In this document: piece by piece, positions 1-55,273 of the stretch
Numbering within the stretch: the stretch's first letter is position 1
Layout: every line of letters begins with the position of its first letter
Assembly (NCBI GenBank): GCA_965240325.2
Contig: OZ251248.1
Coordinates: 1 to 64,000, forward strand
DNA: 64,000 bases
Source: Rebecca billardiae RCC1528
Lineage: Eukaryota > Protista > Haptophyta
Reading direction: 5' to 3'
Translations under genes and position numbers: made by a program
The notes under the pieces: model-generated
Told to the model about the DNA's origin: nothing
Database searches by the model: none
The model's input: only the letters and a program-made list of their open reading frames with translations

Positions 1-82
1 CCTAACCCCTAACCCTAACCCCTAACCCTAACCCTAACCCTAACCCCTAACCCTAACCCTAACCCTAACCCTAACCCTAACC

Positions 83-123
<41 letters not shown>

Positions 124-214
124 CCCTAACCCTAACCCTAACCCTAACCCTAACCCTAACCCTAACCCTAACCCTAACCCCTAACCCTAACCCTAACCCT
201 AACCCTAACCCTAA

Positions 215-250
<36 letters not shown>

Positions 251-401
251 CTAAACCCTAACCCTAACCCTAACCCTAACCCTAACCCTAACCCTAACCC
301 TAACCCTAACCTAACCCTAACCCTAACCCTAACCCTAACCCTAACCCTAACCCCTAACCCTAACCCTAACCCTAACCCTAACCCTAACCCTAACCCTAAC
401 C

Positions 402-442
<41 letters not shown>

Positions 443-742
443 CCCTAACCCTAACCCTAACCCTAACCCTAACCCTAACCCTAACCCTAACCCTAACCCT
501 AACCCTAACCCTAACCCTAACCCTAACCCTAACCCTAACCCTAACCCTAACCCTAACCCCTAACCCTAACCCTAACCCTAACCCTAACCCTAACCCCTAA
601 CCCTAACCCTAACCCTAACCCTAACCCTAACCCTAACCCTAACCCTAACCCTAACCCTAACCCTAACCCTAACCCTAACCCTAACCCTAACCCCTAACCC
701 TAACCCTAACCCTAACCCCTAACCCCAACCCTAACCCTAACC

Positions 743-796
<54 letters not shown>

Positions 797-1060
797 CCCT
801 AACCCTAACCCTAACCCTAACCCCTAACCCTAACCCTAACCCTAACACCCTAACCCTAACCCTAACCCTAACCCTAACCCTAACCCTTAACCCTAACCCT
901 AACCCTAACCCTAACCCTAACCCTAACCCTAACCCTAACCCTAACCCTAACCCTAACCCTAACCCTACCCTAACCCTAACCCTAACCCTAACCCTAACCC
1001 TAACCCCTAACCTAACCCTAACCCCTAACCCTAACCCTAACCCTAACCCTAACCCTAACC

Positions 1061-1101
<41 letters not shown>

Positions 1102-1181
1102 CCCTAACCCTAACCCTAACCCTAACCCTAACCCTAACCCTAACCCTAACCCTAACCCTAACCCTAACCCTAACCCTAACC

Positions 1182-1213
<32 letters not shown>

Positions 1214-1432
1214 CTAACCCTAACCCTAACCCTAACCCTAACCCTAACCCTAACCCTAACCCTACTAACCCTAACCCTAACCCTAACCCTAACCCTAACC
1301 CTAACCCTAACCCTAACCCTAACCCTAACCCTAACCCTAACCCTAACCCTAACCCTAACCCTAACCCTAACCCTAACCCTAACCCTAACCCTAACCCTAA
1401 CCCTAACCCTAACCCTAACCCTAACCCTAACC

Positions 1433-1473
<41 letters not shown>

Positions 1474-2608
1474 CCCTAACCCTAACCCTAACCCTAACCC
1501 TAACCCTAACCCTAACCCTAACCCTAACCCTAACCCTAACCCTAACCCTAACCCTAACCCTAACCCTAACCCTAACCCTAACCCTAACCCTAACCCTAAC
1601 CCTAACCCTAACCCTAACCCTAACCCTAACCCTAACCCTAACCCTAATAACCCTAACCCTAACCCTAACCCTAACCCTAACCCTAACCCTAACCCTAACC
1701 CTAACCCTAACCCTAACCCTAACCCTAACCCTAACCCTAACCCTAACCCTAACCCTAACCCTAACCCTAACCCTAACCCTAACCCTAACCCTAACCCTAA
1801 CCCTAACCCTAACCCTAACCCTAACCCTAACCCTAACCCTAACCCTAACCCTAACCCTAACCCTAACCCTAACCCTAACCCTAACCCTAACCCTAACCCT
1901 AACCCTAACCCTAACCCTAACCCTAACCCTAACCCTAACCCTAACCCTAACCCTAACCCTAACCCTAACCCTAACCCTAACCCTAACCCTAACCCTAACC
2001 CTAACCCTAACCCTAACCCTAACCCTAACCCTAACCCTAACCCTAACCCTAACCCTAACCCTAACCCTAACCCTAACCCTAACCCTAACCCTAACCCTAA
2101 CCCTAACCCTAACCCTAACCCTAACCCTAACCCTAACCCTAACCCTAACCCTAACCCTAACCCTAACCCTAACCCTAACCCTAACCCTAACCCTAACCCT
2201 AACCCTAACCCTAACCCTAACCCTAACCCTAACCCTAACCCTAACCCTAACCCTAACCCTAACCCTAACCCTAACCCTAACCCTAACCCTAACCCTAACC
2301 CTAACCCTAACCCTAACCCTAACCCTAACCCTAACCCTAACCCTAACCCTAACCCTAACCCTAACCCTAACCCTAACCCTAACCCTAACCCTAACCCTAA
2401 CCCTAACCCTAACCCTAACCCTAACCCTAACCCTAACCCTAACCCTAACCCTAACCCTAACCCTAACCCTAACCCTAACCCTAACCCTAACCCTAACCCT
2501 AACCCTAACCCTAACCCTAACCCTAACCCTAACCCTAACCCTAACCCTAACCCTAACCCTAACCCTAACCCCTAACCCTAACCTAACCCTAACCCTAAAC
2601 CTAACCTA
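1..2608 (+). repeat. Telomere, (CCCTAA)n
   Basis: About 2.6 kb of tandem CCCTAA from base 1, the orientation expected at a left chromosome end. Scattered small indels mostly in the first ~1.65 kb. Confidence 0.99.
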
Positions 2609-14310: not shown

Positions 14311-14337
14311 GGTTAGGGTTAGAGGTTAGGGTTAGGG
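14311..14337 (+). repeat. Short interstitial telomeric tract (TTAGGG orientation)
   Basis: GGTTAGGGTTAGAGGTTAGGGTTAGGG exactly at the satellite/copia junction. Confidence 0.9.
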
Positions 14338-45400: not shown

Positions 45401-47877
45401 GCGTCCGCGCGCGCCGGCGGCGCCGCGGCGGCGCCGCCGCCGCTTCCGAGGTTTGCGCCGAGCAGCCGCGCCAGCCGGCGGTGCGCGGCCGCGCGCTCGG
45501 CGGGCGCGCGCAGCCAGAGGGCGGCGGTGGCGGCGGCGGCGGCGCGGTGGTGGAAGGTGAGCAGGCCGCCGCTCGGCGGCCCCGCGGGGCGGAGGAAGGG
45601 GCGCAGCGCGAGGCACACGCGCGCCCAGCGCGCCGCGCTCAACGGCTCCGCGCCCTCCGCCTCCGCCGCGCCCTCCGCCGCGCCCTCCGCCGCGCCGCCG
45701 CCGCGGCCGGTGTCGGCCGGCTGCGGCACCCCGCCCACGCCCGCGTGCACGTCGGTGGAGGCGAGCGCGTCCCTGAGCTCAACCTCGAGCAGCCCCGCCT
45801 CCCCCGCCGCGTGCAGCAGGCACAGCGTGTCGCGCACCAGGCCACCGCTCCGCGGCTGCGGCTGCGGCTGCGGCTGCGGCTGCGGCTGCGGCTGCGGCTG
45901 CGGCTGCGGCGGGGCGGCGCCGGCCTGGTGGGCGGCGTCCGCCTCGTCGTCCTCGAGGGCGATGCGGCGCAGCGCGGCCATCGTCGCGTTCTCCAGCCCG
46001 TCGGGCAGCGCGCGCACCGCCGCGCCCAGCGACTCGAAGCTGCCGTGCAGCCGCAGCTCCTCGCAGCACACCGCCAGCCACAGCGGCACGCCCGCGGACG
46101 CGCGCCCGAGCAGCGCGGCCATGTGCTCCGCGTCCAGCGCCTTGTTGTACCGGCCGAGGTACGCGCGCACGAGCTCGGCGCGCGCCTCCGCGCCGAGCTG
46201 CGCGAGCGAGAGCTCCGACGCGCCGCCCTCCGCGCCGCCGCCGCCGGCGCGCGCGCGCTCGGCCCACGCGCCGTGCGCGCCGCTGCGCTCGAGCGCAGAC
46301 GCGAGCACGACCAGCCCCGGAGGGGGCGGCATCGGCACCCACGCGGCCAGCAGCTGCGCGGGCGCGCCGTCCGCGTCGAGCTGGTCGAGCGCGTCCACGA
46401 AGAGGACCAGCGCGCCGCCGCCGCCCGCCGCGCGCGCCACCGCCGCCGCCTCGAGCGCCGAGCGCGCCGCGGCGGCAATCTGCTCGAGCGGCGCGCCGCC
46501 CAGCTCGGCGCGCAGCGCGGCGCCGCCGGGCAGCGCGGCGCGCAGCGGCGGCGCGCGCAGCAGCCGGAGCAGCAGCGCGCGCGCCGAGGCCGAGCGCCCG
46601 CCGCCCGCGCCGCAGAAGTGCGCGAACGCGCGGCCGCGCCGCTCGGCGGGCGCGTCCGCCGCGCACCACTCGCGCGCCACCGCCGCCAGCACGCTCGACT
46701 TGCCCAGCCCCACGCTGCCCGTCAGCAGCAGCGCGCGCCCGCTGCCCGCGGCGGCGGCGCGCACAACGCCGAGCTCGCGCGCGCGGCCGAGCACCGACGC
46801 GCCGCGCGCCGCCATGAACGCCTCGTGCGCCGCGCCCTCCTCCGCCTCCTCCGCCTCCTCCTCCGCGCCCCCGCCGTCTGCTCCCGCCGCCTCCGCCTCC
46901 GCGCCCTCCGCCTCCGCGCCCTCCGCCTCCTCGGCGTGCGTGGGGAAGTGCTTAGGGCTAGGGCTAGGGTTAGGGTTAGGGCTGGGGTTAGGGTTAGGGT
47001 TGCCCTCCGCCTCCTCGGCGTGCGTGGGGAACTGCGCGGCGATGCGCTCCTGCAGCCACGCCTGCACGCGCGCGCCCAGGCTGCCCGCGCCGCCCTCCAG
47101 CCCCGCGAGGCGCAGCTTGCCGCTGCGCGCGTCCACGCCCGCCGGCGTCGGCTCGTACGCCAGCACGCGGCCGAGCGGCCCGAAGCGGCTGCGCACGCGC
47201 GCGCGCAGCTCCGCGATGTGCGCGGCCGCGAGCGGCGCGCGCTCGACCCAGCCGGGCGGCAGCGCGGCCTCGTCCTCCGCGCGGAAGCGGCGGAGCGCGA
47301 AGAAGGCGTTCGGCCCGCCCGCGCGGTACGCGCCGTGCAGCACCTCCATCGCCGTCACCGAGAAGCCGTCCACCCAGCCGTACGCCGCCGCCGCCTCTGC
47401 GGGCACGTCCGCAGCCGCGGGTGCCCAGCCGTACCGGCTGCCGAGCAGGTTGAGAAAAAACGGCTCGCCGTTGGCCTCGCGGCAGCGGTCGAGCTCGCCG
47501 AGGCACGCGGCGAGCGTCTGCGCCGTGCTCGCGTCGCGCTGCACCCCCCAGCGCAGGTCGCACTCGAGCACGTGCACGCGCCGCCCCTCCGCCCACGCGC
47601 GCACCGCGGGCAGCACGCGCTTGACCAGCAGCTCGCGCTCGGCGTGGAAGTCCACAAACGTCGAGGAGACGAACACGCGCACCACGCGCCAGCCGCGGCC
47701 GCGGAGCGGGACGGGGGGCGGCGGCGGGGGCGGCGTGGGCGGCACGCTCGCCTCCGCCACCGCCCACGCCGCCGCCACCGCCGCCGCCGCCGCCTCCGCG
47801 CTCAGCGGCGAAGCGGGCGGCGGCAAAGCGCCGCCGCCGTGCGACGGCGCGGGCGGCGCGCCGTGCGCCGCGCCGCC

Positions 47878-51372: not shown

Positions 51373-53307
51373 ATGGTGGCGCCTCCCCCGCCCAGCGCGG
51401 GCGCCAATGGCGCGCCGGCGGACGTGCCGGAGAAGTACCGACGAGCGGTGCGCGCGCGCGCGCGCGCCGACGGCCCCCGCCCCGCCGCGCCCCGCCCACC
51501 CGCCGCCCCTCGCCCGCCCGCGCCCCGCCGCCGCGCCGCGCCGCAGGTCGAGCTGGCGCGGCGCGACCAGACGGGCGTGCGCTGGGAGTACTTCTTCAAC
51601 CCGCTCCCGCGCTCCGCGACGAAGTGGCTCGAGTCGTGCCTCTGCGACGCGCGCGACCTGCCGATGGTCCTCCTCATCTCCAACATCTGCACCACCGTCG
51701 TGCTCGCCGCGGCCGCGCAGTACCTGCTCCTCGAGCCGGGCTCGAAATGGGGCCACGTCGTCGGCGCCGTCTACCTCGTCGCCACGACGGTGCGGCCGCG
51801 CGCCCGCCGCCCGCCGCGCGGGGTCGCTCGCCGCAGCCGGGCGCGCGCGCGGGTCTGACGCGCACGCCCACGCCGTGGCGCGCGCGGGCGGCGCACGCAG
51901 GCGCTCTTCGACGCGCGCTTCATCCTCTGCCTGCACTACGCGCAGCACCTCAAGCTCTTCAACCCGGCGGCGATCGGCCGGCTGCCGGCCGCGCTGCTCA
52001 ACGAGGTGAGAGCGGCGGCCGCGGGGCGGGGGCGGGGCGGAGGCGACAGGGGCGGAGGCGGACGCACGGGCGGAAGGGTGCGGGCGGAGGGCTGGCTGCA
52101 GCCCGAGCGCTTTGCTGGGGCTGACCCGGCGCGCGCCGCGCGGCGCTCGGTGCGCGCAGGTGCTGCCCACGGTGCTCGCGCCCCTCTTCGGCATCCCCTC
52201 CGGTGCGCGCGCGCCGCGCGCGCGCTGGTGCAGGGATGCACTTTTTGCACCCCTGCACCCTAACCCTAACCCCCCTAACCCTAACCGCGCGTTGGTGCTG
52301 GTGCAGGGATGTACTTCTTGCACCACGTGGCGATGCACCACGTGGAGGACAACCTCTTCCCGCACGACCTCTCCTCCACCATGCCGTACCAGCGCGACTC
52401 CTTCCTCGACTTCCTCAAGTACTGGGCCACGTGAGTACTCGTTACCCACGCAGTACCCATGTGCCAGTACCCACGCGCACCCGTCCATTCCCCTTGCGCG
52501 CACACGGCGCACGCGCGCGTGCTGACGGCGTGCCCGCCCCCCCCCCCCGCCCGCCCCGCAGCTACGTGAGCGGCACCGCCGTGTACCTGCCGCTCTACGC
52601 GCTCTCCAAGGGCAGGCCCCGGCTGGCCGCGTACTCGGCGCTGCTGCTCGGGAGCTGGGGCGCGCTCGTGTGCGGGGCGCGCGCGCTGCACCCGACCGCG
52701 GCGCTGTGGACGCTGGTGATCCCGGTGCTCAAGTCCTCGCTCACGCTCATGTTCGGCAACTTCTCGCAGCACATCTTCGTCGACCCCGCCGCGCCCGAGT
52801 GCGACTACACCTCGACGTACAACTGCATGGCGGTGCTGGACAACCGCTTCACGTTCAACGACGGGTACCACATCGTGCACCACCTGAACGCGCGCAAGCA
52901 CTGGAGCGAGATGCCGCAGGCGTTCGTGGACAACCTGCCCAAGTACGAGGCGCACGAGGCGCTGCTCTTCGAGAACCTCTTCTTCTTCGACATCGGCATC
53001 CTCGGTGCGCGCGGCGCGCGCGAAGCGAAGCGCGCGCACGGCGTGCGCGCGCGAGCGCGTCGCCGCGCGGCGTGCGCCGCGCCCGGCTCTCGCGCGCGTG
53101 ACGTGCGCGGCGATGGCGGCGTGTGCGCCGCCCGCGGCGCGCGGCGCAGTGATGACGGGCCAGTGGTCCAAGCTCGCGCGGCACGTCGTGCAGCTGAGCG
53201 ACACCCCCAAGTCCGAGGCGGAGATCATCCGGCTGCTCAAGCGGCGCGTGCAGCGCATCCCCTGGGCGCCCACGCCCGACGGCAAGCCGAAGAAGGCGCT
53301 GGCGTGA
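51373..53307 (+). CDS. Membrane fatty-acid-desaturase-superfamily protein, 7 exons
   Basis: His boxes HYAQH, HHVAMHH and HIVHH, plus FGNFSQH and FNDGY. Exons 51373-51447, 51547-51789, 51901-52005, 52160-52202, 52307-52430, 52562-53004, 53150-53307. Confidence 0.88.
52257..52286 (+). repeat. Telomeric-repeat insertion in intron 4 of the desaturase-like gene
   Basis: ACCCTAACCCTAACCCCCCTAACCCTAACC between 28-bp direct repeats 52224-52251 and 52297-52324. Confidence 0.9.
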
Positions 53308-53741: not shown

Positions 53742-55273
53742 ATGCCCGCGCGCGGCGCGTCCGCGGAGGACGCGCCGCCGGTCGACCCCGCCTCGGCGCC
53801 CGCCGTCAAGGCCGCGCTGCGCGCCCAGCTCCAGGCGCTCGTCGGCGACGACTCGAGCGTGACCAAGCGCAAGGGCGCGCTGCGCGCGCTCGCCGAGCTC
53901 GTGGGCGCGCCCGGCGGCTGCGCGCCCGCGCTGCTCGACGAGGGCGGGCCGTCGCGGATCCGGTGGCGGCACGTGCTCATCCGCGTCGTCGCATTCCTCG
54001 CCGCCGAGGCCGAGCGCCCCAAGGGCGGCGTGAAGCGCGCGGAGGCGGAGCGGCTGCGCGCGCTGCTCACCGCCGCCGCCGAGCGGCCCGGGCTGCAGCT
54101 GCGCAAGGTGGCGCGCGAGCTGCTCGCGCACGTGGTCGGCGTGCTCGTCGGCGCCGTCTCGCGCGACGGCGTCGTCGACGAGCCGCACTACGAGTGCGCG
54201 CGCGACCGCGACTCGGCGTACCTGCGCGCGCGCGCGCGCGCTCGCGGCCGCGCGCGCGCGCATGCGCGCGCGCCGCGCGCTCAGCCGCGACCGCGCGCGC
54301 GCGCGCGCGCGCAGGTACGCCGAGTCGCTGCGGCTGCTCCTCTCGTTCCCGCCGTACGCGGCGCGGCTGGGCGACGACGACGTCCTCGACGTGCTCAAGG
54401 CGTGCGGCCTGTGGCTCGCGCGGCCGCCGCGACTGTCCGCGCCCGCCGGCCGCGGCGCGCGCGACGCGCCGCCCGAGCTGCTGGCGTGCCACGCGCAGGT
54501 GCTCGCCGAGCTGTTCGGCGCGCGCGACCTGGCGCTGGCGCCCAAGGCGGTCGGTGCATTTGCCAAGCGCGCCGTCGCCGCCGCCGAGGCGGCGCTCGGT
54601 GGCGGCAGCGCGCGCGGCGAGTGCGGCGGCGCGGCCGACGGCGGCGGCGCGGCGCACGCGCCGGGCGGCGGCGGCGCCAAGCGCGCGCGCGAGGGCGGCG
54701 CGGAGCTCGCGGCGCTGCGCGCGGGCGCGACGATGGGCTCGGCGCAGCTCCGCCGGCTCACCTCGCTGCTCGGCGTGTGCAACGCGCTGTGGCACGCGCA
54801 CGCACCCGACCACCTGCGCGCGTGCGCCGGTGCGCGCGCGCGGCGCCCGCCCGCGCGCGCGAGCGCGCCGCGCGCGCCGCGCCGCGCCGCGCGCGCGCCC
54901 GCGCCCGCGCTCACGCGCACGCCCTCCGCGCGCGCGCGCGCGCAGAGTTTGGCGCGAACGAGCACGTGCGCGCCGCCGCGCTCGCGCTCTGGCGCCAGCG
55001 CCACGGCTGCGAGGAGGCGTGCGCGGCCGCGCGGCTGCACCTCGCCGCGTGCCGGCTGGCGGGCGCGGCGGCGGAGGAGGCGGCGGCGGCGCGCGCGTGG
55101 CGCCCGCTGGTGCTGAGCGCGCACGCGAGCGCGCACGCGCGCGCGCTGCTGCGCGACCTGCCCGTGCTGCTGCGCGCCGCGCCCGTCGGCGGCACCGGCG
55201 CCTTTGTCGCCGCCGCCGCCGCCGCGGAGGCGGCCGCGGCCGCGGCGGGCGGCGCGGCCGCGAGCGGCGGCGC

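Follow-up and report, generated by a model that had tools for sequence, protein, structure and literature searches.

Telomerase has inserted short interstitial telomeric sequences (ITSs) at double-strand breaks of primate and rodent genomes (Nergadze et al., Genome Biol 2007, PMC2246262), and 4.6% of the rodent and 16% of the primate loci carry a duplication (PMC2246262). Repair of staggered double-strand breaks has also been described as a source of intron gain or growth, in the neointrons of Daphnia (PMC4202315) and by Farlow et al. 2011 (PMC3020277); telomeric sequence is nowhere mentioned in the Daphnia paper (PMC4202315). Here we analysed a stretch of 64,000 nucleotides of the haptophyte Rebecca billardiae RCC1528 (the window; contig C32, 1-64000, of the 72-Mb, 41-contig assembly G000), in which intron 4 of a fatty-acid-desaturase-like gene contains a short telomeric tract flanked by two copies of the intron 4/exon 5 boundary. 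With a probability of about 0.6, we read this structure as a DNA-repair scar, and not a mobile element, that combines a telomerase-type insertion, a duplication copying the splice acceptor and branch sites borne by the insert. Insertion by telomerase in break repair, of the mammalian type, is a known process; the form in which it would remodel an intron, with a copy of the acceptor and with branch sites, is new.

The scars of the alga resemble mammalian ITSs in that a short run of the host's own telomere hexamer lies at an internal position with in-register microhomology in the flanks, and some of the mammalian loci have target-site duplications, filler bases or deletions, as is the case here (PMC2246262). 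We favour a telomerase-type reading for the alga because of this in-register microhomology, an argument also used for mammals (PMC2246262). The algal scars differ from the mammalian ones in that about 31% have duplications, and long ones (10-34 nt), and in that the tracts nearly always carry the C-rich strand as the sense strand and are concentrated on small chromosomes and towards chromosome ends. At the present locus, moreover, the duplication holds a splice acceptor and the tract would supply branch sites.

In de novo telomere addition, or chromosome healing, telomerase acts at G/T-rich microhomology. The scars are alike in that a non-telomeric 3' end in G, GG or GGGT would have been extended in register, and unlike in that synthesis would have halted after 3-12 units and the end been rejoined, with no arm lost. 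Staggered-break introns share with the locus the repetition of the adjacent exon's terminal bases on the opposite side of the insert, and in the staggered-break model secondary staggered breaks lengthen existing introns, which would be alike here. The repeats of the Daphnia neointrons are 4-12 bp long and the origin of their inserts is unknown (PMC4202315), whereas the repeat described here spans 28 nt, contains a complete acceptor and encloses telomeric filler. Introners (e.g. PMC9860276) are similar in that a target-site duplication supplies a splice site and the insert is spliced out; the locus differs from them in that neither a multi-copy element nor terminal inverted repeats are present and the duplication length is not fixed.

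The gene, its intron 4 and the telomere that serves as reference are laid out as follows:

51373-53307, plus strand: host gene, fatty-acid-desaturase-like, single-copy, with seven exons (PF00487 and orthologue alignment)
51373-51447, 51547-51789, 51901-52005, 52160-52202, 52307-52430, 52562-53004 and 53150-53307, plus strand: exons of the host gene
52160-52202, plus strand: exon 4, 43 nt, encoding VLPTVLAPLFGIPS plus the G of a split Gly codon, and matching ILPTAIAPLFGIPSG of the orthologues
52203-52306, plus strand: intron 4, 104 nt, GTGCGC...GCAG, phase 1, the sole GT..AG pair restoring GIPSG/MYFLHH
52203-52223, plus strand: 5' residue of intron 4, a (GC)n-like run without adenine
52224-52251, plus strand: copy 1 of the duplication, intronic and decaying, with 10 nt of intron 3' end and its apparently dead CAG (ending at 52233), then an 18-nt copy of exon 5
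52252-52257, plus strand: junction filler cctgca, 6 nt, echoing the adjoining TGCACC motif (read from the sequence)
52258-52286, plus strand: interstitial telomeric tract with the C-rich strand as sense, composed of two CCCTAA units, CCC, two further CCCTAA units and CC
52287-52296, plus strand: 10 nt separating the tract from copy 2, which may be filler or else belong to the diverged outer part of a 37-39-nt duplication
52297-52324, plus strand: copy 2 of the duplication, predicted to be functional, with the last 10 nt of the intron and the CAG taken to be used (ending at 52306), then the first 18 nt of exon 5
52307-52430, plus strand: exon 5, beginning GMYFLHHVAMHHVEDN, with the first His box (translation and orthologue alignment)
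7-2598, plus strand: terminal telomere array (CCCTAA)n of about 2.6 kb, which defines the organism's repeat unit

The first-pass annotation of the window had reported a 28-nt sequence occurring twice, 73 bp apart, with CCCTAA repeats in between, and its positions and both mismatches are exactly as claimed. The two copies (52224-52251 and 52297-52324) have a start-to-start spacing of 73, are identical at 26/28 positions and differ by two transitions (C/T and T/C). A direct-repeat search of the window returned a longer repeat of 37 nt with 84% identity (52215-52251 / 52288-52324). The 28-nt repeat is not due to chance, because it is not low-complexity and because repeats of this kind are rare at decoy positions: a flanking-repeat score of at least 20 is reached at 10/90 telomeric tracts of the genome vs 5/360 decoys. 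As had also been stated, the duplication covers the intron-4 CAG and the first codons of exon 5, each copy consisting of a CAG acceptor (ends at 52233 and 52306) and 18 nt of exon 5, and only the downstream copy reads on into the His box HHVAMHHVEDN, within the open reading frame (ORF) 52309-52434. In copy 1, the Tyr codon TAC is now CAC and the Phe codon is TTT. There is no AG dinucleotide between 52234 and 52304, as read from the sequence. Since the window opens with a true telomere, the array at 7-2598, the internal tract at 52258-52286 can be identified as built from the alga's own telomeric hexamer. Bases of the exon boundary are directly repeated around the inserted DNA, as in Daphnia. 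The telomeric scar with flanking duplication in intron 4 is confirmed as a real feature.

The exon model was obtained by tblastn of the Diacronema lutheri protein P0002 and the MMETSP protein P0004 against the window, with boundaries read from the sequence. Exon 6 matches PF00487 (FA_desaturase) with E = 2.6e-16 and 60.6 bits vs a cut-off of 29.7, and the His boxes of an FA_desaturase are present as HHVAMHH in exon 5 and HIVHH in exon 6. The nearest proteins in a protein word search are the hypothetical desaturase of D. lutheri (P0002, 68%) and MMETSP/JGI transcripts (66-71% identity); none of the matches of this search is a transcript of R. billardiae itself. By these identities the alga is pavlovophyte-like and distinct from D. 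lutheri. The GC content at third codon positions (GC3) is 0.98-1.0 in all exons, which argues for a working gene. No paralogue sharing intron 4 was found in the genome assembly, where the gene is single-copy. The introns measure, in order, 99, 111, 154, 104, 131 and 145 nt. Orthologues are all contiguous through GIPSGMYFLHH (within ...LFGIPSGMYFLHHVAMHHVEDN...), and the use of the acceptor at 52233 would add 73 nt, which is not a multiple of 3 and shifts the frame; intron 4 must therefore end at the AG at 52306, and the insert would be spliced out of the mRNA. A crude GC3-phase intron finder called intron 4 too, but was discarded because of its many false short introns and a wrong call of intron 5.

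The composition of intron 4 narrows down where its branch point may lie. From its 5' end, intron 4 is free of adenine over 52203-52231 and has its first internal A at 52232; copy 1, the filler and the tract together account for all 13 internal A's. The upstream AG (52233) should thus be unusable, as it has no adenine before it to serve as branch point and would also cause the frameshift. With no A upstream of 52232 and no AG at 52234-52304, the branch is expected to lie in inserted material and the first downstream AG to be used. The tract offers four CTAAC motifs, with the A at 52263, 52269, 52278 and 52284, at distances of 43, 37, 28 and 22 nt from the acceptor AG (52306). The remaining five introns of the gene have their last CTGAC-like A 35-48 nt before the AG. 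Most probably, then, the branch point is in one of the four telomeric CUAAC motifs. Short introns in this genome contain only 1-3% A. They have 1-5 A's per ~90-110 nt (e.g. 51448-51546, 54218-54314 and L003:448-535), so that their branch adenine is almost legible, usually as a CTGAC-like motif 30-48 nt before the AG.

The first-pass annotation had further argued that, without the insert, the intron would be only about 31 nt long. This holds: counted from the splice site at 52203, 104 - 73 leaves 31 nt, a remnant that is below all 40 inferred high-confidence introns (88-546 nt, none below 88) and that in addition has no adenine at all. The stricter GC3-phase intron finder behind these 40 introns allowed lengths of at least 15 nt and was used only for the lower length bound. 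Intron 4 thus appears to depend now on the insert for its branch site. A related pattern is seen among 18 candidate introns with sense-strand tracts, 8 of which have their last CTAAC at a distance of 10-45 nt from the acceptor, vs 3.1 expected under uniform placement (P = 0.004; intron models inferred from periodicity). An earlier, cruder test of tract bias toward the intron 3' end was not significant (9/16). At C25:162620-163620 (L002/L095), a 129-nt degenerate telomeric array, in which CCCTAA is mixed with CCCTCA, CCCAAC and CCCTAT, stands just upstream of a sirtuin-like exon (DIVFFGESLP...), with its last CTAAC 25 nt from the inferred acceptor. Our literature search brought up no paper that connects interstitial telomeric repeats with branch points or with the building or remodelling of introns, nor any on this subject in haptophytes.

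The insertion in intron 4 belongs to a class, of which a sister event is found in the same window:

46918-47035, minus strand: 34-nt duplication (one mismatch) around a 50-nt telomeric tract, in an ORF of 2104 amino acids (aa)

This event adds 84 nt in total, in frame within the 2104-aa minus-strand ORF, and its C-rich strand is the sense strand. The first-pass annotation ascribed both insertions to the same mechanism, a view supported by their common layout of duplication, short tract and duplication (34 and 28 nt) and by the genome-wide excess of such duplications. A genome scan with two edge patterns gave 46 + 75 = 121 matches, and 0 with reversed-pattern controls; 86 loci were retrieved and 90 internal tracts of 24-129 nt were analysed. 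A non-telomeric flanking direct repeat scoring at least 10 was found at 28/90 tracts (31%) vs 21/360 decoys of the same geometry (6%; Fisher p = 8e-10), and one scoring at least 18 at 12/90 vs 6/360. Across the class, the duplications are 10-34 nt and the inserts 16-77 nt long, the latter being made of telomeric units plus 0-22 nt of filler.

Some members and near relatives of the class are worth describing individually. At C18:1811820-1812820 (L051), tracts at 457-486 and 526-555 alternate with near-identical host segments of 46-51 nt, which looks like either two successive rounds of insertion plus duplication or the tandem duplication of one scar. At C31:619800-620800 (L027:388-415), a tract of the variant hexamer GGTTCG/GGGTTC sits inside a perfect 23-nt duplication, so that the architecture is alike and the repeat is off-template. 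A third internal tract of the window (14313-14337, TTAGGG-type, ~25 nt) borders a stretch of lower GC content (about 67%, at 6-14 kb), and no flanking duplication was detected around it. Just inside the terminal C-strand array, at 2624-2827, there is a subtelomeric satellite of ~19-20 nt, which carries GGTTAGGG in the opposite orientation and whose units end in ...cgcag or ...aaatg.

Tracts are strongly oriented with respect to genes. Where two or more coding windows agreed on the direction, 27 tracts have their C-rich strand as sense and 2 their G-rich strand (p = 1.6e-6), the coding strand being read from the GC3 phase, a procedure validated on the desaturase exons (plus strand) and the 2104-aa minus-strand ORF. 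Both tracts of interest in the window follow this rule, and the bias holds for in-frame exonic and intronic inserts alike. It could result from selection, as a G-strand transcript offers repeated GGTTAG-like donors and TTAG/G acceptors. It could also reflect a transcription-coupled origin, in which the 3' end on the transcribed strand is extended and a repair patch of ~30 nt sets the size of the duplication. The distribution along the genome is uneven as well: C1-C24 (~55 Mb) carry ~18 loci (0.33/Mb), of which 11 lie no more than ~300 kb from a contig end, as against ~62 loci on the small contigs C25-C39 (~17 Mb, 3.6/Mb; e.g. C31:318787-1122279 and C39:67071-457334), a contrast that may be exaggerated by search patterns demanding GC-rich flanks.

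The junctions of the inserts carry a telomerase-type signature. For 24 loci oriented with the G-strand on top, the 3' end of copy 1 is in register with the telomeric repeat over at least 2 nt at the primer-side junction of 9/24, vs 3.4 expected (permutation, p = 2e-4). The distal junction is in register likewise at 6/24, vs 2.1 expected (p = 4e-4). The in-register microhomology reaches up to 5 nt on the primer side vs 3 nt on the distal side and is more frequent on the primer side, and the first base of the duplication is G in 20/24 loci. At the intron-4 locus itself (52203-52324), taking the 28-nt duplication gives a primer-junction microhomology of 0 nt, and a value of 2 nt (GG) is obtained only with a longer, indel-containing duplication. 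Because filler of 10 nt and 6 nt blurs the local junctions, the case for telomerase comes chiefly from the junctions of the genome-wide census. The alga has a telomerase, judging by PF12009 (Telomerase_RBD) above cut-off at C24:1295489-1296196 and by canonical telomeres on contig ends. The putative TERT gene at this position shows two exon-level Telomerase_RBD matches above cut-off, within a 1553-aa open frame.

In the mechanism that we propose, a break or nick would have occurred at the intron 4/exon 5 boundary of the desaturase gene, and telomerase, most likely, would have added about five TTAGGG units to a 3' end on the antisense strand. This end would then re-anneal 28-37 nt back via G-rich microhomology, and fill-in would copy the re-annealed stretch again, giving the order duplication, tract, duplication. 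Two routes would lead to this outcome, staggered nicks with 3' overhangs and a nascent strand that dissociates and re-primes, and the sequence does not discriminate between them. With the duplication spanning the 3' splice site, an intact acceptor and exon start would be kept downstream of the 73-nt insert, and the entire insert would be removed within the 104-nt intron. Simple subtraction of the insert gives a non-viable intron; the original branch-site segment would therefore have been lost at or after the event, plausibly by slippage deletion at the flanking (GC)n runs, leaving the intron reliant on the insert. Telomerase is the most likely source of the tract at 52258-52286, and our confidence in the mechanism overall is moderate.

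Several points weigh against this reading. The primer junction at the locus is unclean, with 10 nt (52287-52296) between the tract and the 28-nt copy. Protein conservation and sequence are the only grounds for expecting that splicing uses the AG at 52306 and a telomeric branch point, and the gene models of the census come from GC3 periodicity, not annotation. The sole genomic orthologue, that of D. lutheri, lacks the whole intron, so that the postulated loss of a branch segment is not observed. Finally, the two-sided microhomology also fits the capture of a telomeric fragment by microhomology-mediated end joining. According to this alternative, a pre-existing double-stranded telomeric fragment, such as debris of telomere trimming, was captured by end joining at a staggered break, whose overhangs were filled in to give the duplication, with no involvement of telomerase. 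It would explain why microhomology is found at both junctions and not on the primer side alone, and why filler nucleotides occur on both junctions of the locus, and it is given as an alternative to telomerase in the mammalian study (PMC2246262). Captured fragments would, however, not be expected to be uniformly as short as 16-77 nt when telomeres are at least 2.5 kb long, nor to leave microhomology that is longer and more frequent on the primer side (up to 5 vs 3 nt); although the sequence by itself does not tell the two origins apart, we regard this one as unlikely.

The history of intron 4 bears on whether the insertion remodelled an intron or made one. D. lutheri has no introns at positions 2, 3 and 4, residues 19-187 being encoded in one exon, and none of 24 metagenome homologues, which have at most 45% identity, is interrupted at the intron-4 position. 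The comparison with orthologues thus gave a partial answer: intron 4 is absent from D. lutheri (68%) and from the 24 metagenome loci, and the empty site in the distant D. lutheri is an uninterrupted exon from which the whole intron is missing, hence not the immediate pre-insertion state. These data suggest that intron 4 may be lineage-specific and fairly young. At the empty site, the Tyr codon of D. lutheri is TAC, in agreement with copy 2, and its Phe codon is TTT, in agreement with copy 1, which fits one substitution per copy since the duplication; the implied changes are TTT to TTC in the exon, along the GC3 pressure of the genome, and TAC to CAC in the dead copy. With one substitution in each copy, the scar would be old and long tolerated. 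As regards the neighbouring intron, the middle intron of the D. lutheri orthologue (L009:3001-4742; DFAK/YW) lies ~4 codons upstream of window intron 5 (YWAT/Y), an offset that suggests intron sliding or independent gain. The D. lutheri middle intron has a 21-nt tandem repeat inside, and window intron 5 contains, at 52443-52478, a 14-nt unit CAGTACCCA... three times in succession.

The suggestion of the first-pass annotation that the insertion may have rescued or built the intron is supported in part. Construction of the intron is unlikely, since the acceptor predates the duplication, but the size argument holds and the intron appears to depend on insert-borne branch sites, the 31-nt remnant being free of adenine. 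In its full form, this alternative holds that an uninterrupted ancestral exon gained all 104 nt in one complex repair event or a tight series. It would account for the lack of any interruption here in homologues with genomic sequence (D. lutheri and the 24 metagenome loci), for a non-inserted remainder of only 31 nt that is A-free and (GC)n-like, and for the origin of ~70% of the intron and all branch-site candidates from the insert. Yet the last 10 intronic bases, with the CAG, precede the exon bases in both copies, so that the acceptor was already present at the time of the event; the donor and the next 21 nt are outside the duplication and have no visible source; and a frameshifting insert of 73 nt without a donor would have killed the gene. 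De novo birth of the intron in a single event is unlikely, and we hold the outright building of intron 4 to be quite improbable.

A comparably poor candidate, slightly less favoured still, is a retroelement reverse transcriptase (long interspersed element (LINE)-like or Penelope-like) that copied telomeric-repeat RNA at a nick. Variable-length target duplications are typical of such target-primed reverse transcription, and the duplications of 10-34 nt are as expected for it; the genome also has at least 55 RVT_1-bearing loci with long open frames. These loci are, however, mostly on large contigs whereas the tracts are on small contigs and near chromosome ends, no tract has retroelement sequence, poly(A) or a conserved tail beside it, and telomerase is a simpler source of the exact repeat. 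At the intron-4 locus, the insert likewise contains neither element sequence nor a poly(A) or element tail of the kind left by non-long-terminal-repeat or Penelope-like elements. A transposon or introner family was also considered and rejected: a search of the assembly with 52100-52450 gave telomeric matches only, the non-telomeric part of the insert is single-copy, and in place of the multi-copy core and fixed-length duplication of introners there are duplications varying from 10 to 34 nt. Such a family is excluded because the loci have only the telomere unit in common. It is highly improbable that the structure is an error of assembly or of long reads, or that a telomere-like microsatellite arose later in an unrelated tandem duplication, as the copies differ by two transitions, one of which preserves the D. 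lutheri codon state, the architecture recurs at ~28 loci, and errors would not be expected to produce a 27:2 strand bias of tracts relative to genes.

Insertion by telomerase at internal breaks has so far been a neutral curiosity of mammals. The desaturase locus is a clean case in which the scar, 73 nt long and frameshifting, is unreadable as protein and hence must be spliced. The gene would have survived through the spare acceptor provided by the duplication and through the reading of the telomeric C-strand as textbook CUAAC branch sites. The locus thereby joins off-telomere telomerase activity, intron gain or growth by break repair, and the economy of splice signals in an extremely GC-rich genome, and it makes a testable prediction, namely that the branch point maps within the telomeric tract. 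More tentatively, and as a speculation that we would not expect to hold in full, CCCTAA cassettes written by telomerase might act as portable branch-point modules in an adenine-starved genome whose introns often have just one usable branch adenine, the cassettes being preferentially kept 10-45 nt before acceptors, with splice-site-copying duplications letting genes survive breaks at boundaries and replacing, relocating or seeding introns. With its dozens of scars, their strand bias and their clustering near chromosome ends, the alga might serve as a natural model for the effect of break repair on introns.

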